Positions 3,834 to 56,074 of a stretch of 64,000 nucleotides of DNA are shown piece by piece. The DNA comes from Pavona decussata. Its lineage: Eukaryota. Position 1 is the first letter of the stretch. Every line of letters begins with the position of its first letter. A program made the translations under genes and the position numbers. The stretch lies in contig CDRNST010000126.1 of the NCBI GenBank assembly GCA_977016875.1, forward strand, positions 310,001 through 374,000, written 5' to 3'. Under the pieces are notes generated by a model that made no database searches, was not told where the DNA came from, and saw only the letters and a list, made by a program, of their open reading frames with translations.

Positions 3834-6620
3834 TTTATTATTATTATTATTTCTGTGAGAAGTTTAGTTGTAGGAGAGAATTGGATACTAGCAGTCCCAT
3901 TCTTTTTAGTTGAGGGGCGAAAGCTAAAACTAATTATGCAGTACCCGCACCCTTATAAGCTGCAGCTACATTGTTTGTTGTTGTTGTTATTGTTGTTGTT
4001 GTTTTTTTCGGGGGGTGGGCTGAGAACATTGTACTGTTGTTCGTTCTTTTGACCCCTCAACCAATCATGTAAGACGTTGCAAACAATGCAGGTCGCCCAA
4101 GATTAAGACGCAGCAAAGCGAAGAAGCAACACAGTCAGTGTGAAAGGAGAGCAACTGTTCCTTTGCTTCTTTTGCTCACCATCTCGAAGGTCAAAAAGGA
4201 CTACATCGATGTAATTGTAACCAACCAATCAAAGATTCCTTTGAGGGGCCGCTTCAAGGCAGGATTTTGGTTCTATCCAAATTAAAATAACTGAGTTATA
4301 ATGCGTGTCATTATGTTCTATAGGTTCCATTTTTAGATATTTTGACGTCCATGTTGGATCCATCTCTCCCGCTGACCATTCAGGAATACGAGGAGTGGGG
4401 TGAACCCGGGTAAGACTGCAACCATTGTTATTGTTGTTGTTGTTGTTGTTTCGTTTGGTTCATTTTCGTACCTTAACCCTTTAACCCCTAAGAGTGCCAA
4501 TTAGCACATAATTCAATAACTCTTTTAATATTAATTTTGACAGATTTCTATGAATTTTTGACTCGGAGATGGTCTTGTGAAGGTCTACTCATTAAAAGGA
4601 TAAAAACTTAACCCCCTCCCATATGCGATATGGTTGACCACCCCCATAACTTTTAAACTTTTTCCCCCTAACAGGATTGGGACGTTTTTGAACTTTTAAA
4701 TTTTTACGTTTTAAGGCCATTTATCTCAGAGCCATAACTTCCTAGCAGTTATACGCGTAACTAACATTTCCCAATTCTTTTTACGAGTGCTACCTGGCCT
4801 GTACGCTATTAGACACTATTGTTCCCTCAGTAATTCGAGTATAGTTGCATTTTATACACCACTTGTGCGAAAAAGGGGTACGTGAAGCGTGCATGTGCAG
4901 TAAGCCACTACCTCTCTGCAAACTCTTTTTTTCAACTCAACCTCAGGCTATTCTTCTTCTTCTTCTTCTTCTTTTTTTTTTGAGGACGTTTTTTATCATT
5001 ATTTTATTTATTTGTCTTTTATTTTATTAGCCTTAAACTACAGAGAATGCAACATTTACAGTAATAAACACCGCATAGACTACTTATAATAATTACAATA
5101 CTGACAGTAACAATACCTACTATACTTGTAATAATTATAACTATACTTTCGATATTAAGGGCATTGTTGTGACGTATTAAGTCGTAGAGGACGATCCTGG
5201 TTGCGTGATCATATCATCGCCATTGAATTACTAATTAAAGCACAAAATTAGGTGGGTGAAAACCTGGTAAATCGACCTGTGAATATGACGTCTGTCAAAG
5301 GTCACTCAATATTCTTTAGAACCTTATAAGTGCATCTTGCATAAAAAAAAAAAAAAAAACACGTCCATCTTTTTTCCAGGTCAAGTGAAAGTGACTTTCA
5401 TTACATCAAGTCATATTGCCCATACCAGAACATTAGGGATCAGGTGCGTATTGCTTTGAAGGGTTTTCGGTCACTTCGCCCCATGCAAGATCGCAGATCG
5501 CTCCACACTACGGTTAGATCGCTCCACGTGATAGTTAAATCGCTCTATGCGGGTCACCATTGGAGCTTAAAGTGTATAACTTTGAATTCTGTCAGTGAAA
5601 CTCCACTGTTATTAACTTCCCACTGCACTTTTTAAAATCTTTCCAGGTAATCTTCTAAGCCTAAAATAAATAAATAAAGAAATCCTCTAAGCTCTGCATT
5701 CATGTGAAACTTTTAATATTCTGCTTGTTTATTTTCGAAAATTTGGTCCTCGAGCGAGTTTGAATTTCGTACTTTTAACTTTTTTCCACCAATAAACTTG
5801 CCTGAATTTTTGACAGATATATCTTCCTGGAAAATATGCGGAGTGTATTCAATCTTCTGCTACCTCATGCACTATTCCAAGCTTTTCATCCGTAAGGGAT
5901 GTCGGGTAATTGTTTGATTCGCGTCTCCGGGAAAGAGCTCTTAATCAAGGGTAGGTGCTGATTGAAAAAACCTTTCACAGTTACTGTCAAAATTCCCGCG
6001 CGCTTATTGGTTCGTTGTTGTTGTCTCTAAGAGTACAGACAGTACAATTGACGTCAGATGTAACACGCGTGCTTTCTCAGCGGAAAATAAAGCCAATTCC
6101 ACACGTACTTTTCCCATGTTAATGTAAAAAACAAAAACAAAAAAACAACAACAACAACAAATCGACGGCTGTTTTCTATGGTCTATACGACCATAAAATG
6201 ACGCCATAAAATGTTGAAAACTTGACAGTGAAACCACTCGCCCACTTGAGTTTTGAACATTTTATGACGTCATTTTATGGTCTGTAAGAGTACACGCCAT
6301 AGAAAACAGCCGTCGGGCGCGATTTGTTAAGTTAATTGTGTAACCCGTGTGCCCCTTTGTCCTTACAGCCTTACCCTGCTGTGATGGTCGGCTCTTCAAT
6401 GAATGATGACCGTGTGCCGTACTGGCTGCCTCTGAAGTGGGTGGCTCGTCTCAGAGACCAGTTGTCAAGTCTGCAGACATCCGAGACACCGCTTGTTGTG
6501 TGCAATGTTGATTATTACTCTGGACACTTTGGATCAGAAAATACTTACCGGCGGTTTGAACAGGTACAGAAACGAACGAATGGAGGGAGGGACGGATCGA
6601 TGGACGTACGATCAAATCAG

Positions 6621-34900: not shown

Positions 34901-37900
34901 GATTTTTAAGGAGAAAGACAGTAGCTATCCAGACGAGATCTGTGATTGGAGAACGAAACAATAGGTCATTGGTTGGGAAAAATGGATCCCCGACAAAAAA
35001 ACAATGGGAGCTACAGTACCACGGGACCAATGAAATTAGAGGTCTGGAAGAGGTACTGTACTCTCCTTTTTAAGGCCATAAAGTTGATAAGAAAGAGAAA
35101 AAAGCATTTAGATTCATGCACATGCGCTGAAATGTGAACCCCTTCCTTTAACATCAGTCGTAGTTTGTTGAATAGTTTTGAATACGACGAAAACCTATCA
35201 TTGGTTGGACCAAAAGCCCATCTCAGTGGCTCTTATCATAACGGTAAAGACCAGCACACTTCTGCTTTAGTCGTTTCAAAATTTTACATGCAGCTGCTTA
35301 AACATTTTACAGCGTTAAATTAAAAGAAGTGTCATTTACATAAAGGGCTTTAAACCCGAATTGAAGATGTAAACACCTTTCTTTACTTAGTCGTTGTTCT
35401 TTCCGGGTAAAGTGCAAAACGATATCATTCTGCACTAGACGTTTTGTAACTGCATTTGTATCATAGCGTACCAGGAATTGCTATGTGTAAGTAGTTGACA
35501 TTTTGAAATGTTTTTTTTTTGTTATCTCTATTATCTAGCATCGAATTATTTCTGTCATGATCAATCTATTTTTGCCTTTGAAAGTTGCCTAAATGTATAG
35601 GGTTATTTGAAACTGTAGATGACATGCGTAATGCTGAAACATGTCTTTTACTATTGTAGAAAACACTTTTAATTTGCCTGACAATCAAGACCCGATCCTT
35701 CATACCTTAATTGAGAGAGCGCTGGTACTACGCTAACATTATGTGTCAGATGTTTTCCTTTACCTTTTTCACACCTTTCTCCCCAGGTTCCAGTTTGACA
35801 TATGCAAAGGTATTTCTTGTCTGTGTAGCCATTCAGACAGGTTCCATTATGAAGGCATGGGTTGCTGGAGCATGGATTCTGCACAGAACAAAACTCAATT
35901 GTCATCTTTGCTTTTGTATTTTTTACCCCATGTACAACTGGCTTACGGTAGACAAATGCTGGCGGAGAGCAAATGATGGTGGTGATGACGAGGAAGTTCA
36001 TCGATGATTTTGTTATGATTTGACGATGATGACGNNNNNNNNNNNNNNNNNNNNNNNNNNNNNNNNNNNNNNNNNNNNNNNNNNNNNNNNNNNNNNNNNN
36101 NNNNNNNNNNNNNNNNNNNNNNNNNNNNNNNNNNNNNNNNNNNNNNNNNNNNNNNNNNNNNNNAAAAACAATACATTTTACAGTACAATATTACAACTAC
36201 TAAACAAAAGGCTGGTACAATAAACTTTAGATGATGAATGTTGATGATGAAAAAAGAAGAAAGGTAATGACGACGGTGAGATCGTGGTGGTTATATTATA
36301 GAAGGATCTTTGTTCACATGTTAGCCCTTATCAGAATACATTAGGACAATCAACAAAATTAGCTACAAATTAATACAATGTACAAATCGAAAGATCTTAG
36401 CAAACTTAGTAATCGTTGAAAATTTCAGCATGATAGCATGTTAATTAACAAATCGACGTCAGGTTTCTATGGACTAGACACTTATAGATCACAATATGAC
36501 GTCATAAGATGATCAAAATTCAAGTGGAACCACGAGCCGCAGGCGAGTGATTTCCCTGTCTTTTGACATTGAATAAATTGTCTCGTAATGCCGACACCTT
36601 CAATTTAGCAACAATTATAGTGTGAAAGAAAGGTGGTCGTAAATCTACACGAACCTCGGTGTCTCTGTAAGTAAAACTCCTTCGTCCCTTGAGATCACCC
36701 GGATGTAGACTGCGATCTGAATCGCTCAGTTGACAAAGAACTTTTTTGTTTACCGGTGGGCCAATGTTGAACGACACACACGTTCGTTCCATGGCACATC
36801 GTTCTTTGCAAGTGTGACCCATTCCCACGCTTAAAGAAATGTTCTTAATCACGTGACCTTCAAGGGCGTATCCAACTGATGGCGTGGCAAACTTCAAAGA
36901 TCGGCAAACGCCTCCGCATCCTTCTGCAGCACCACAGGAGCTCTCCGCGACTTCTTGATCTGTAAATAATAGCATCGCAATTACTGAAATATAGACGATA
37001 CAGCGAGTTGAAGGCTGAATTGCTACAGGAAAGTCTTGGAAAATAATTAGTTCTTGAGCAACTGTCAAAAATAGAGTGTGTTTTCGATGGCCATATTGGA
37101 GGAGCGAAACAATGCCTTGATTTTCCTTTGGGAAAAAAAATTTTTTTGAGAATGATGTATTGCTTTCAGTGAGTGACACAGGCATACTCGGAAAAAGGGA
37201 ATCCGAGTGCTCCTATCAGAAGTCGAACCTAAGACCTTCCAAGCTTTTGCAAACATTTGTTATTGTTTGACTTTTCCAACCTGGGCGCCATGAAAACATT
37301 CTATTAAAATTTTCTTTAATACCTGATGACTCCAGACAGCCATACAGCTCCACTCGCATTGATACGAACCCTTTCCAAGTGATCGGACGAAAACGGATGT
37401 AGCGTGCGTTGATTGGTGGGTTCAGTTCGTGATAAACTATTGTGTCCTGGTCTGTATTTCCATCAAAAACCTAAATCAGTTAATAGATTAAGTCAGGTAA
37501 GACGGCGGCGAGACCCAGTTGCTTAAAGGGGCTCTCACTGCCACGGAGATTTTGCCGCATTTTGACCAAAACTACTCAAATATTAAACGTAGAACTTTTT
37601 CTCTAACATGAAATTGTTCGTAGAGCGCCGAGGGGAAAATATAAACTGATTGCTTCAATGAAGAACAAACTATAAACCTGTTTTCAGCAATTTCTCCAAA
37701 ATACAAATTGGCCAATTCTTTCTATTTGTAATCCATTTCCATCCAAGCCATCCGCAGCAAAAAATAACAGCTACTAGCTTATGTATACACGTGGGGCAAT
37801 TGTTAACAATACTGAACCATTATATTAACATTTCCATCTATACAAATATGTTTTTACGCTATTTAAAGGTATACTAAAAACTGGTGACACTGCCCCTTTA

Positions 37901-40466
37901 AGGACCGCCGGACTTGTAATCGGTCCTGTCCTGTCCTGTCCCGTATTCATACCCCTGGCTGCCTGCGAGCAGAAATATTTTTGGGACCGATCACTTTTCG
38001 TCCGAGTTTGGTTTTCGTTCACGAATGTGATCGGTGTGACCTGATGACACGGGAACAGAAGCCCATCTATTAGGCAAAAAACTGAGTGAATAGAGCTCTA
38101 ACTGGGCAAGGAACATCATTTTGTTGCTTAGCACCGATCTGTAGTATTAAGGGTTAAGCACTGATTCGTTTTTGTTTTTTATTTTTTATTTATTTTTTAA
38201 TATTTATTTATTTATTTATTTATTTATTTATTTTTTTTTTTTTGGGGGGGGGGGTCCTCTAAAGTTTGTAATTTAAGTGAATGTTCAAGTTCATTTTGGG
38301 AGATAGAAAGGAGTGTTAGTCAAAAGATAGTCCCAAAAACATCTTTCTCAGTGTTTGCTGCGATTGCATGCAGCCAGCTACCATTTGAGAGTTTAAAAGA
38401 TGTTTATGTTCCATGCGTGTTGCTTTCTTATTTTAATATATGAAACATGTTGTATTTGAAGTAATAGATCAAACACGAGGAAGAGTGTTTCCTCCGATTT
38501 CCAAACACCGAGAAGTAGGTTGGAAAAACGAGGCGCAGCCGAGTTTTTTTTAACCAACCTCGAGGTGTTTGGAAATAGGAGAAAACACTCTTTCGAGTGT
38601 TTGATATGGCTTCTCAAACTACTGATAATTCTTGGAGAAATTCGAAGCAAAAGCTCACATTTTTAAACCTCCTCCTCGGTAGTGATTTCCTTTGTTTCGG
38701 CTTTATGAATTATTAATGAGTTTGAGAACTGTAGATGAAAGATTTAAAAGGGAGATCATCACCATTTGAGCAGTTGAGAAAATAAAGCCTGAAAAAAAAT
38801 TCAGTTGTGAAAGGGATTCGAACTCATGACCTATGCGATACCAGTACACTACCCTACCAACTGGGCTTTCAAGCCAACTGAGAAATGGTCTATTTTGTGA
38901 ATCCGTGAAGAATGATTAAAATGGAGTGAATGTATCAAATATCATTTATTTGATCGAACTACCGATGAGAGAATTCATTCATTCGTTCCGGTTCGTTTCA
39001 TACGTAAAATTACAATGAATTTTTTTTTATAGGTACAACTAAATCACTAGCGGTAATCATAGATGAAGGATCGCGTGCTGTGTCATGAAGATAATGAAAC
39101 TGGTTGGAATCTTCCAGCAAACAAATCACCAATTTTCTTGTGTGAACATGCTAATAGACCAAAACAACAACCGCTCTGTTTCCGGGAAAGTTACAACAAT
39201 TTTTAAAAGCTAATCGAGTAATCGTTTTTTTCGTAATAAGTCTTTTCATCCCACTCTTTATTCGTCCATGATCCAGTGAAAAAATATTTTGGAAGCCGAT
39301 GTATTGTACAATTATGTATGGAACTAAAAGCTTGCCAGTTTACTTCGTATTTTTCCTGCATGATTGCAACGGGATTCGCAGAAAGATGGGAAAATTTCGC
39401 CCGTAGTCGAAAACCATTAACATTGCAGGGTTCACTTCATTCCAACCTCTCGGGCAATGAAGGAAAATATTATTGAATGTGTGTTACCTTGTCCCGGTTT
39501 TGTCCTTGTTCCCTGTAGTACTGAAAGTTCGCAGTGTTGTTACTGTACTGCAGTTTGTACGTGGTTATCCACTGCAATTCATTGCCATGTCTTCCTTGCG
39601 TTGCTACTCGTGTCACCGTGGCTGTGTTATTCATCAGATCAATCTGGAGCCACGGGCTACTCTCTGCAGCGTGAGCTGACCAGGCGCCTCTTTTTATTCC
39701 ACTTCCTTGGAAGTTTAATCTTCCTTGGTGGGCTGCGTGATTTTTATCCACTTCAGAAGAGGCTCTTATCTGTGCGTCAGAAATTGCACCGCTCTCCATA
39801 CCGAGAGCCTCCCCACACGCTGCAAAATCGATGGACATATACTCATTTAGCCTCGTCCCCATTCGTCCTTGGCGCTCGGCTGAACGTTACTGTTGAAACG
39901 CCCAGGGCGGCCTCGGGCTATCGCACCCGGTCCCAAGCCTCCGACGGGCAACTTGGCTCGCTCGATAAGCGCGATTTGGGCATGGAAAGAGGCTGAAACC
40001 GAGTTTTTAAAATCAATCCACTATCTTCTCTGTGGCTGCTGAATGTTTACCCCTCCCTGTACTCGTAGCAAAGTGGAATAGGTTTAGGTATAATGAATTC
40101 GTCACAAAGTAAATACAAATTGCAAAAGAAAAAGACAATTAAAAATTACAGTGAAACAAGAAAGTGGCCGGAAGAGGGAATAGAACTTCCATTCCACTTG
40201 ACACCTAACTCCCATAGAATAAAAATTAGAAGTTCAGTAATGCATGCATTTATTTATACGATAAGTAAGTTAATTAAGAATACAAGTGATGATTAAGAAA
40301 TTGCTAAGAGAGAAAAAACTGGAACGTTTTATAGATAGATGAGGTTTGTAATGAATTTAGTTTCGGTTTAGTTACCTTGTTCTGCAATTGCGTTGCAATG
40401 AGTCCAGCCTCCCAAGATAAGAAAGGTGAATAAGAGAGGCCACACTAATGAAGTAAATCCCATCAT
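31960..40466 (-). CDS. Secreted mosaic protein: signal peptide, F5/8 type C (discoidin), PAN/apple-like, EGF, fibrinogen-N-like and USOMP5-like skeletal organic matrix domain (~556 aa)
   Basis: Phase-consistent exons 40466-40376, 39819-39488, 37470-37323, 36959-36655, 35878-35764, 34097-34061, 33649-33517, 32469-31960. Motifs [31 protein letters not shown]; [14 protein letters not shown]; [24 protein letters not shown]; [39 protein letters not shown]. An N gap sits in the intron before the EGF exon. Confidence 0.85.
32514..33117 (-). mobile_element. Non-autonomous Kolobok-type DNA transposon with THAP-domain remnant
   Basis: TTAA duplications at 32510-32513 and 33118-33121, ~115-bp imperfect TIRs starting AGTGCC, internal [29 protein letters not shown] (32858-). 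Confidence 0.8.
33122..33456. repeat. tRNA-derived fold-back repeat
   Basis: Both arm orientations present; gtctcctgtagctcagtggtagagcatgcgaactagtaatcgaaagttcttaggttcgactcc. Confidence 0.7.
34248..34490. mobile_element. MITE
   Basis: agagattaagcaccacgtttacggcaaac ... gtttgccgcaaacgtggtgcataatctct. Confidence 0.75.
36035..36163. other. Assembly gap (N run)
   Basis: 129 N. Confidence 1.
36440..36570 (+). mobile_element. Truncated hairpin element (same family as 5972-6336) with intact GA/GNA apex
   Basis: ttaacaaatcgac...ca-C-GA-GCC-GCA-GGC-GA-G-tg (36533-36547). Confidence 0.55.
37523..37901. mobile_element. TTAA-flanked MITE (Kolobok-type termini)
   Basis: ttaa-aggggc ... gcccct-ttaa. Confidence 0.6.
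38461..38728 (+). mobile_element. Non-autonomous hairpin-ended element with Crypton-like end architecture
   Basis: Hairpin 38468-38605; TTCTCAAACT (38611-38620) is the exact reverse complement of the far end AGTTTGAGAA (38719-38728). Confidence 0.65.
38758..38915 (-). repeat. Second tRNA-derived dispersed repeat
   Basis: Minus strand agcccagttggtagggtagtgtactggtatcgcataggtcatgagttcgaatccc (A/B-box-like, degenerate). Confidence 0.55.
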
Positions 40467-42076: not shown

Positions 42077-44179
42077 ATATATGTTATTGAACTAGCGTGA
42101 GGTCCGTATTGGGAAAATATTGGTCGAGTTCCTTTTTTTGCAAGTTTATGGACCGAGCCGAAGGCGAGGTCCATAAACTTGCAAAAAAAGGACGAGACCA
42201 ATATTTTCCCAATACGGACTGAACAAGCTAGTTCAATAAGGTTTTTATTATATAGGCTTTCCCGCTTGTTGCTTTCTAGTCCGCGTGAAACTTGTTTATG
42301 ATCAAGTTGTGCGAGAAAAAGTGCAAGAAAGCCTTCTCAATGCTGACGCGTACTCACAAACAAAAACCACGTGGAATAATTCTGATTGGCTCGCGCACGA
42401 AAAGGCGACTTTTTATTGGTCAAGGTTTGACACGAAAGTTTGACATGTCTCGTCAATCGAAGTGAAAAAGTTCGAAAAATGAAAATTTAGCTCATTTGAG
42501 ATTCCGAAGAAAATGCATTTCTTAAACGTGTTGAATGTTTAAAAGTGTCAACTTTTGAGAAAGACTTACTATGGAATGAATGAAAATAGATGAAATTGAA
42601 GCTTTTGTAGTCAAAATTGCATTTCAATCGTCTTCATCGTCACTTAAAATGGCTCGGCGCTTGCGAAGCGGTGGCTGATCATGATTCGTAATCTGGATGT
42701 TAAACGAGCAGTTTTGGAAATTTGCTCCTTGAAAAATAGCCGATCCGGCTTCTTTTGTGGTCGTCATACTGGTACTTTCCACTGTAGTTGTTGCCTGTGT
42801 ATTGCCAACTGCTTGGAGCTCGCTTGTGGTTGTTGATGAGCGACTGAGGGCTAACGACATTCTTCGTTGATGCTGAATGGAAGCCGATTTGTAGGAATCC
42901 AAGCTTTTCAGATTTCGATGTCCACTCAGTTGGGCCACGTAATTTTCAGGAACATCTGAATCCAGCAATCGTGAAATGCAGGTCTTTCGAACCGAGTGAT
43001 TGGTAACGCGTCCTTGCAAACCAGCATTTTGGGCAGCTTTGGTGAGTAGCTTCCCGATTTCATTCTTGCCAAGCGAACTTTTCTTGTACCACACTGCATC
43101 AGTAGCCTTTCTTTGATGTTTTACGGCCAAGTAGAATGGTGCCTCTGGTTGATTCATCTCGATGGGCCTGTGACTTCTCAACAGCTTATAGTACTTGACT
43201 GGACATCGCTCGTTATCAGTAGCTTGAGCAGTAGGATAAAATGCTCGGTGACCGCTTGCTTTGTCCTGCCCCTGGCGCGTCTTCGAGCCTCTCTCAGCTT
43301 TCCAGACCAGCATTTCATTGCCTGTGTCCGGGTCAGTTTCAAGGCTGACGTCGCCCCACTGAAGCCTTCTACTTTCATCTCTTGCTCTAAAGCCAAAATG
43401 TAAAGCCAGGAGCCACCAAACTGTGCGCTGTAGAGCAACCGGGTTGTGCTCGCCAAATTCTCCTTCGGCAAAGAGCTTGTCTTCTTCAACAGCGGTGACT
43501 TCTCGGCTTGCTTGTGGACGATTGCCTTTCCCTCTCTCCACGACAAGCTGTTCTCTTTTTGCACTTAGGACTTCTCGGGATAGCTTGAATTCGTCACCTT
43601 GAATGAGATTGGCTTGTGACCCGTGGGTATTAAGATAACGCTGGATGCTTCGTTGCAGGCAAGTCAGAGTTCCAGGTTCGTATTCGTCGCCATTTTTCTT
43701 TCTTACATCTTTAAAAAACGCGCAGAGCAGCAGATTAAGTTCCACCGAGGGTATTGTCTCAATATTCCTGAACTCGTTCCGTTGGTGGCAAAATTTTCCC
43801 CATATTTTAAGGTCAGATTTCGTTTTCTCTGTAGTGCTTCTGGCCTGCTGTTGCTCAATGAAGTCGCGGTACTCTGAGGCCTTGTCAACGGAATCTTCTT
43901 TGGTTTTTTCGTCGAGTTTGTTATTTTCAGAGCTTGTTTTCGTTCCTTCGTCAGTGCTCTTGGAGTTAAACTCCGACATCACGATTTAAAACGACAGTTC
44001 CTACTATATTAAGTTAATTGGAAACAGTTTTTACTTTGCGTTGTTAAAACTGAAACAGTAACCACGAAACACTTGACGCTAGCGGTCCATCTTAGCGGTC
44101 CGTATAGGAAAATTCGGACCGCTCAGGGAGCCAATTAAAATGCTCCTTTTCATCGCGGACCAGTTCAGCTATATAATAA
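42077..44179 (-). mobile_element. Crypton (tyrosine-recombinase DNA transposon), apparently full length, ~2.1 kb
   Basis: Absent from the paralogous site (cgcggtgtcgt|tgtaagtc at 46976/46977); no TSD, no TIR; single YR ORF; subterminal 156-nt palindrome 42084-42239. Confidence 0.88.
42624..43982 (-). CDS. Crypton tyrosine recombinase (DUF3504 / phage-integrase fold; ZMYM/QRICH1/KCTD1-related)
   Basis: Uninterrupted 452-aa ORF; FFKDVRKKNGDEYEP, catalytic set GFRARDE (R), GSKTRQG (K), TNHSVRKT (HxxR), SGHRN (H), LDSYK (Y); RCPVKYY, PFYLAV, WYKKSSLGKN; C-terminal NLS-like PPLRKRR. Confidence 0.92.
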   Translation of the reverse strand: MMSEFNSKSTDEGTKTSSENNKLDEKTKEDSVDKASEYRDFIEQQQARSTTEKTKSDLKIWGKFCHQRNEFRNIETIPSVELNLLLCAFFKDVRKKNGDEYEPGTLTCLQRSIQRYLNTHGSQANLIQGDEFKLSREVLSAKREQLVVERGKGNRPQASREVTAVEEDKLFAEGEFGEHNPVALQRTVWWLLALHFGFRARDESRRLQWGDVSLETDPDTGNEMLVWKAERGSKTRQGQDKASGHRAFYPTAQATDNERCPVKYYKLLRSHRPIEMNQPEAPFYLAVKHQRKATDAVWYKKSSLGKNEIGKLLTKAAQNAGLQGRVTNHSVRKTCISRLLDSDVPENYVAQLSGHRNLKSLDSYKSASIQHQRRMSLALSRSSTTTSELQAVGNTQATTTVESTSMTTTKEAGSAIFQGANFQNCSFNIQITNHDQPPLRKRRAILSDDEDD

Positions 44180-55886: not shown

Positions 55887-56074
55887 TATCGGCTGGTTAA
55901 TAAAAACCGTGTCTGATAATGGTTGCCATCGCATGGATCCAAATTGGTCATCAGCTGTCCTGGCACCCGATCATTCTCCGCGGAGAATGATCGGGTGCCA
56001 GAACAGCTGATGACCAATTTGGATCCATGCGATGGCAACCATTATCAGACACGGTTTTTATTAACCAGCCGATA
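55887..56074. repeat. Near-perfect spacerless palindrome, 2 x 94 bp
   Basis: Centre ctccg|cggag at 55980/55981; one mismatch. Confidence 0.95.

Follow-up and report, generated by a model that had tools for sequence, protein, structure and literature searches.

The window analysed here, a 64,000-nucleotide (nt) stretch of the Pavona decussata genome (GenBank assembly GCA_977016875.1, contig CDRNST010000126.1, positions 310,001–374,000, forward strand), contains an intact Crypton at 42077–44179 and, 3.3 kb upstream, a 268-base element at 38461–38728 that is a complete copy of a repeat of about 293 bp. An earlier note, made from the letters alone, had described this small element as unrelated in sequence to the Crypton and identical in architecture to its ends. 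It had proposed that the element is a non-autonomous passenger of a different tyrosine-recombinase family, and that it lends independent support to a model in which Cryptons recombine as a folded substrate.

A GA-studded hairpin between sharp ends

Direct reading of the sequence agreed with every coordinate given in the earlier note for the arms, the spacer and the GA/GA pairs of 38461–38728. Folded as DNA, its + strand reaches −57.0 kcal/mol, against a mean of −25.6 kcal/mol for shuffled versions (z = −8.6; 0 of 200 shuffles were equal). The predicted structure contains exactly three 2 × 2 GA/GA internal loops, all closed by C–G pairs, which are the three tandem pairs first described, and the apex GGC-GCA-GCC is located at 38532–38540, where a GCA triloop caps a 3-bp G/C stem. 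A further single purine–purine mismatch, additional to the first description, opposes G38502 to A38574 (the G/A loop at positions 35–36). Beyond the hairpin, the 10-nt A′ box is perfectly complementary to the terminal 10 nt of the element, arm A (38719–38728). The hairpin is no chance palindrome: it belongs to a repeat family whose alignment ends sharply at both 38461 and 38728. The coding capacity of the element is limited to short open reading frames (ORFs) that extend into the flanks. The features are collected in Table 1.

Table 1 Parts of the element and its flanks, in window positions
Feature	Positions	Strand	Basis
Left half-site of the target, TTGAA; flank, outside the element	38456–38460	+	Left flanks of 29 independent copies
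5′ tail GTAATAG, first 7 nt; presumed crossover spacer	38461–38467	+	Start of the family alignment
Imperfect hairpin of 138 nt, arm B (38468–38476) to arm B′ (38597–38605)	38468–38605	+	Fold, compensatory changes
GA of GA/GA loop 1 (partner 38595–38596)	38477–38478	+	CGAG retained in 28–30 of 30 copies
GA of GA/GA loop 2 (partner 38562–38563)	38510–38511	+	Predicted structure, copy alignment
Apex module GA-GGC-GCA-GCC-GA: loop 3 (38530–38531/38541–38542), 3-bp stem, GCA triloop	38530–38542	+	
5-nt spacer ATGGC (family consensus ATAGC), facing the 5′ tail when the ends are joined	38606–38610	+	
A′ box TTCTCAAACT, complementary to the 3′ terminus	38611–38620	+	Fold
Non-coding body; relative to the consensus, 25 bp are missing from the window copy between 38654 and 38655	38621–38704	+	
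Conserved 3′ terminal 24 nt, closing with arm A (38719–38728)	38705–38728	+	96% identity to L084, L092 and L093
Target side: 7 variable nt, then T at +8; flank	38729–38736	+	T in 27 of 29 copies

Family copies and target site

The coral genome searched comprised 602 Mb. The window copy returned 3,826 first-look candidates, and the 40 that were scored were all full-length, at 84–90% identity. A 25-mer from the foot of the hairpin, with up to two mismatches allowed, gave 1,076 matches against none for its reversed control, so that the family has at least 1,076 copies; the terminal 14 nt, which recover elements sharing the 3′ end, occurred 1,941 times against 9 for the control. When loci were compared with 600 nt of flank on either side, similarity in all of them started between 38455 and 38461 and stopped at 38728. 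Aligning 30 copies yielded a consensus of 293 bp with the ends GTAAT…GAGTTTGAGAA, from which the copies diverge by 1.0–7.4% (median near 3.4%; the window copy, 4.9%). Internal deletions vary between copies, and the CGAG words are kept in 24–30 of the 30, depending on position. Two partial matches (C169 and C170, covering query positions 1–199) that were considered as long elements proved to be short variants, and five copies spaced 3.4–4 kb apart on C58 (1421693–1436545; L033 and L034) belong to a tandem segmental duplication whose units are 89–96% identical.

The flanks of 29 independent copies define a target. To the left, they favour T-T-G/C-A-A: 21 of the 29 have T at −5, an equal number have T at −4, and A occupies −2 in 27. 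To the right come 7 variable nucleotides and then, in 27 of the 29, a T at +8 (binomial P about 4e-12). The target is thus TTGAA/N7/T, two short half-sites around a 7-nt spacer, which is the core-site layout of tyrosine recombinases, and it mirrors the joined ends of the element itself: arm A, 7-nt tail, arm B. The TTGAA of the left flank and the GAGAA that ends the element are alike, a short microhomology, and in head-to-tail tandems GAGAA is joined directly to GTAAT, consistent with the likeness of the element end to the preferred target.

One locus, L018, preserves a nested insertion. There, the tail of one copy is separated from its B arm by two other elements, one of the 293-bp family and one of a 351-bp sister family, which are arranged head to tail on the opposite strand and directly follow GTGTTTGAT. 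Once these two nested elements are taken out, the sequence reads TTCAA/GTAATAT/ATCAAACAC, an intact 5′ end with its own target, with nothing duplicated and nothing lost; this is an exact reconstruction of an empty site. The earlier note had called for the ends to be confirmed and for target-site duplications (TSDs) to be looked for, and neither the 29 flanks nor the L018 reconstruction shows a TSD. The alignment of copies likewise contains no terminal inverted repeats (TIRs), the two termini of the 293-bp family not being inverted repeats of each other. The junctions are uniform: the heptamer that follows the left crossover is in every case the tail of the element, the heptamer beyond the right end is in every case target sequence, and the two are non-homologous.

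These ends bear on the idea that the family is a foldback element or a miniature inverted-repeat transposable element (MITE) derived from a cut-and-paste transposon with a DDE transposase. A small, high-copy element with a strong inverted repeat would suit such an origin, but the inverted repeat here is internal and confined to one end, and the termini and junctions lack the TIRs and TSDs that it predicts; we consider it extremely improbable.

A second recombinase lineage and its small derivatives

The 351-bp sister family (seen at L018:1804–2154, − strand) has its 5′ GTAATA, its TTCTCAA box and its last 24–25 nt in common with the 293-bp family. Among 483 candidates, at least 41 copies are 100% identical over 349 nt. 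A pattern search anchored on the A′ box of this family, with the letters 120 nt downstream excluded, returned three places, one of which holds an intact-looking partner. The element at L084:118–2028 (+) is 1,911 bp long, is preceded by TTCAA on the left and followed on the right by 7 nt and then T, and contains the first 177 nt of the sister family at 119–295 (99.4% identity) and its last 173 nt at 1856–2027 (98.8%). Its sole gene has two exons (ORFs 325–837 and 948–1784) separated by a short GT..AG intron and lies on the strand that carries the GA mismatches.

Used as separate queries and not as a joined protein, the two exons identify the gene as a recombinase. Exon 2 matches the Pfam families DUF3504 (2e-17) and Phage_integrase (31.8 bits; cutoff 27.1), and exon 1 matches QRICH1, a domain set that is also that of animal CryptonA elements (PMC3212892). 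Aligned with the recombinase of the window Crypton, exon 2 is 26% identical (E = 3e-15), and the R, HxxR and H..Y motifs of the two align. Searched against the genome, it gave 139 scored matches, including more open copies at 94% and a lineage at 67–69% identity. The stretches upstream of three members of this lineage (L085, L087 and L088) carry a matching tail and hairpin type, and those downstream of two members (L092 and L093) end in the same 24 nt, followed by N7-T. In public databases, the recombinase has 238 homologues at E ≤ 1e-20, one of them a ZMYM4-like protein of the anemone Actinia tenebrosa. The many near-identical copies of the 351-bp derivative speak for recent activity, and L084 and the sister family look like a recently active pair.

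The 293-bp family can be tied to this lineage at both ends. Its terminal 24–25 nt are 96% identical to those of L084, L092 and L093; the tail GTAATAT, equivalent to its own, opens the autonomous elements L084, L085 and L087; and its first 157 nt align with the autonomous hairpins at a mean column identity of 78%. In both, the GA/GA loops fall at positions 17–18, 50–51 and 70–71 from the 5′ end (loop 1 occupies the identical position in L084 and L087), the apex is GCA and the length to the A′ box is about equal. The TTCTCAA of this box is invariant in 11 of 11 aligned elements. Both termini are therefore matched to an autonomous element at the level of the lineage, not to a copy bearing the stem of the 293-bp family itself. 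The search for long copies with a tyrosine-recombinase ORF that the earlier note had recommended thus led to relatives that encode a tyrosine recombinase only, at lineage level, and no partner with a DDE transposase, a reverse transcriptase or an HUH endonuclease was seen among the elements with matching ends. Two loci were rejected as autonomous masters: L091 proved to be a small copy that carries a nested insert of 1.4 kb and lacks a recombinase, and L065, a locus at 41% identity to the Crypton, contains the two halves of a family copy split by several nested repeats. The window Crypton family was also rejected as the partner: together with its relatives at 75–40% identity (30 loci, 18 downstream stretches), it has no similarity to the element.

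Being non-coding and multicopy, with the termini and hairpin plan of elements that encode only a tyrosine recombinase, 38461–38728 is very probably what had been proposed, a non-autonomous (MITE-like) Crypton whose recombinase lineage is distinct from that of the Crypton 3.3 kb downstream. Judged from sequence, the partner is identified as a lineage; a master with the stem of the 293-bp family may be extinct or have been missed, or the family may be cross-mobilised, and the common ends suggest mobilisation in trans by the related lineage. Such derivatives have precedents in CryptonI-1N1_RPro of Rhodnius and CryptonA-1N1/N2_OL of medaka (Kojima and Jurka 2011, PMC3212892), which are likewise short and non-coding, share both ends with a tyrosine-recombinase-only element, outnumber their masters and lack TIRs and TSDs. 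The DUF3504-type domain of the lineage recombinase is a further likeness to animal CryptonA (PMC3212892). According to the same survey, animal Cryptons lack terminal repeats of every kind (PMC3212892), unlike the element described here, which has a conserved 138-nt GA/GA hairpin at one end, followed by a mirror of the joined ends, and a defined target that can be read as TTGAA-N7-T. The kind of element is thus known, and its hairpin end structure is not described in the literature that we searched.

Helentrons (Helitron2-type elements) have asymmetric terminal repeats and a 3′ hairpin, and the element resembles this layout when read on the minus strand, where a 5′ terminal repeat and a matching subterminal repeat are followed by a 3′ hairpin and a short tail. 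Like these transposons and those of the IS200/IS605 type, it combines a subterminal hairpin with orientation-specific insertion at a short target word and leaves no TSD. Movement by an HUH endonuclease would account for these traits, but the long elements with these ends encode a tyrosine recombinase and no Rep or helicase, the ends are GTAAT…GAGAA instead of TC…CTRR, and the target consists of two half-sites 7 nt apart and not of a dinucleotide; we regard an HUH-type origin as very improbable. Replitrons, which are found in plants and algae and have direct terminal repeats, were dismissed.

The window Crypton gives an internal comparison. No nucleotide similarity was found between it and the element, as had been claimed, and the recombinases of the two lineages stand as far apart as the exon 2 alignment indicates. 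Yet both have a tail, a long CGAG/CGAG hairpin, an apex of the form C-GA-stem-GNA-stem-GA-G, a box complementary to the other terminus, and no TSD. The target layout is equivalent as well, with two half-sites in different letters: in copies of the window Crypton (L035–L057), the right flanks carry TTAT(T) or TTAC about 6–7 nt past the end, resembling the B arm of that element, and its core arms are of the TTATT type, whereas those of the 293-bp family are of the TCAAAC type. The gene of the window Crypton lies opposite the GA strand, whereas that of the L084 lineage lies on it.

Possible constraint on the fold and a proposed folded-strand model

We aligned 11 hairpins: four came from autonomous elements, one from the sister family, and three each from copies of the 293-bp family and from diverged subfamilies. 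RNAalifold recovered 55 pairs, 19 of which show pair-keeping changes on both sides, although most of these double changes separate two clades, so that the independent events are fewer than 19. Paired cells amount to 97.1%, a level that 0 of 500 shuffles reached (86.4% when partners are shuffled); sliding the 3′ partners by 1–3 columns reduced pairing to 32–50% and compensatory pairs to 1–4. Throughout this alignment the GA/GA loops stay unpaired and keep their letters.

The apex belongs to a wider class. The motif C-GA-(2–5-bp stem)-GNA-(stem)-GA-G forms the apex of the hairpins in six or more Crypton families of the genome that encode a recombinase, and its version with a 3-bp stem occurs 3,293 times, compared with 96 times for the reversed control (34-fold), with complementary stems in nearly all matches listed. 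The apex CGAGCCGCAGGCGAG at 36533–36547 of the window belongs to another hairpin family, and this apex makes up about a third of the first 100 matches listed for the motif class. A third type of GA-studded hairpin, with the feet AACAATT…AATTGTT, was seen in L009 (about 1200–1460, −), L012 (about 143–400, +) and L064 (about 3976–4235, −).

In those six or more Crypton families, the hairpin lies about 400–550 bp downstream of the gene and on the opposite strand (10 of 10 in one set); in the L084 lineage it lies upstream, on the strand of the gene. The earlier note had held that polarity is the same, and this stands for the DNA: the relation of the GA strand to the element ends is constant across families, and its relation to the mRNA varies, which points to a role in DNA rather than in RNA. 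The variable relation to the gene also counts against a structured RNA gene or a hairpin-RNA locus (a small-RNA precursor) that was repeated by chance. The very stable fold could be read that way, and tandem GA pairs are common in RNA motifs. However, an Rfam search inside the element gave no family match (the best, SNORD69, scored 22 bits against a threshold of 37), and the GA strand that is sense to the gene in the L084 lineage is antisense in the other families. Sharp ends of the transposon type and a target preference add to the case against, and an RNA locus is accordingly a most unlikely source of the family.

When the last 14 nt are placed before the first 175 nt, as they would be in a circle, the fold continues through the junction: A:A′ stacks on B:B′, leaving a small internal loop in which the 7-nt tail faces the 5-nt spacer. 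This was seen in silico in the consensus, the window copy, the sister family and L084, and it means that one strand can rebuild a duplex-like core site with the crossover point (GAGAA/G) inside it. We know of no demonstration of how Cryptons move. In the mechanism that we propose, the element would leave as a circle; on its GA-rich strand, the joined ends (A/tail/B) would pair with their internal mirror (B′–spacer–A′) and extend the hairpin through the junction; this single strand would thereby restore a duplex-like core site; and the recombinase would exchange that strand alone with the target, with replication completing the insertion.

The closest parallels are bacterial. In the integron attC site and in attP(+) of the phage CTX-phi, a single strand folds as an imperfect palindrome and so recreates a duplex-like core site, conserved unpaired positions mark the strand, one strand is exchanged and replication completes the reaction. 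The element resembles them in its imperfect palindrome, its strand-marking unpaired positions and products that are consistent with one-strand exchange, here in silico only. It differs in its animal host and in its tandem G·A mismatches, where the bacterial sites are short (60–140 nt), are served by IntI or XerCD and use extrahelical bases; and its site, unlike theirs, is complete only once two transposon ends have joined.

The principal competitor keeps the identity of the element and replaces the folded strand by an ordinary double-stranded circle (the Goodwin model), the hairpin being accessory: a cruciform, an arm-type array for protein binding, or a signal for replication or transcription. 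On direct reading, the joined ends alone form a duplex site with inverted GTTTGA/TCAAAC arms; the target, too, has the two half-sites that a duplex reaction needs; and one strand contains six CGAG words, to which a protein could bind. Against this, the CGAG words stand at exactly mirrored sites of an otherwise complementary palindrome and survive co-variation of the stem, and the internal mirror of the junction (B′–spacer–A′) would have no obvious use. The junction outcomes are also uniform although the 7-nt spacer is non-homologous. A two-strand exchange over such a spacer should leave a heteroduplex and mixed outcomes, whereas uniform junctions, with 7 nt of element on the left and 7 nt of target on the right, fit one-strand exchange. 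A duplex circle is a distinct but minority possibility in our estimation.

Several observations weigh against the folded-strand reading of this non-autonomous Crypton. Across the genome, +8 after the common 3′ end is T in 1,411 copies and another base in 530, so that the preference holds for 73% of copies and not for all, against an expectation of about 31%. No autonomous copy with the hairpin of the 293-bp family itself was found by three pattern designs, which used exact anchors only and gave nothing or variants; exclusion patterns placed directly after A′ or after position 188 had no result, and the version with a distant exclusion, which for the sister family had led to L084, here gave only variants and L091. 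Palindromes can retain pairing without selection, for instance through arm-to-arm correction, although such correction would erase mismatches and not preserve them. Finally, the GA strand is predicted to fold only slightly better than its complement: the difference is 0.8 kcal/mol for the window copy and has the same direction in 11 of 13 hairpins.

Taking these points together, we assign a probability of roughly 0.5 to the whole reading, a non-autonomous Crypton that moves with a folded-strand step, and that step taken by itself would be close to an even bet. Its extension to the Cryptons of cnidarians and their small derivatives, which would transpose through a single folded strand, by one-strand exchange at a site of the TTGAA-N7-T type that replication finishes, is put forward a little more tentatively. 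The same architecture with compensatory changes in an independent lineage provides the support that the earlier note expected, for a structural role and not as proof of a single-stranded substrate: the folded-strand model gains an independent, internally consistent case that is suggestive. The hairpin with its junction mirror is no quirk of one element, since it recurs in a recombinase lineage that is only 26% identical and has the opposite gene orientation. A derivative can stay mobile with this layout alone, and a readable target with two half-sites accompanies it. What is new here is the second recombinase lineage, together with its small derivatives and the layout of the target. If the folded-strand mechanism holds, it would be the first eukaryotic counterpart of integron attC recombination and CTX-phi integration, and the intact 1.9-kb element and its young 351-bp derivative would make a testable, probably active pair; with dozens of identical copies of the derivative at hand, L084 offers a practical test system.

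Three further features of the window were recorded. A T-rich microsatellite of the (TTTA)n type, followed by T13 and G11 runs, lies at 38161–38255, 200 bp upstream of the element. On the other side, 80 bp from the element, a tRNA-like sequence occupies 38808–38871 (−; Rfam tRNA, 29.7 bits); the repeat that contains it recurs in L008, L058 and L065 and is probably a tRNA-derived short interspersed nuclear element. At 55887–56074 there is a near-perfect palindrome of 188 nt, centred on CCGCGG and with about 91 paired positions, that is unrelated to the GA-hairpin class.

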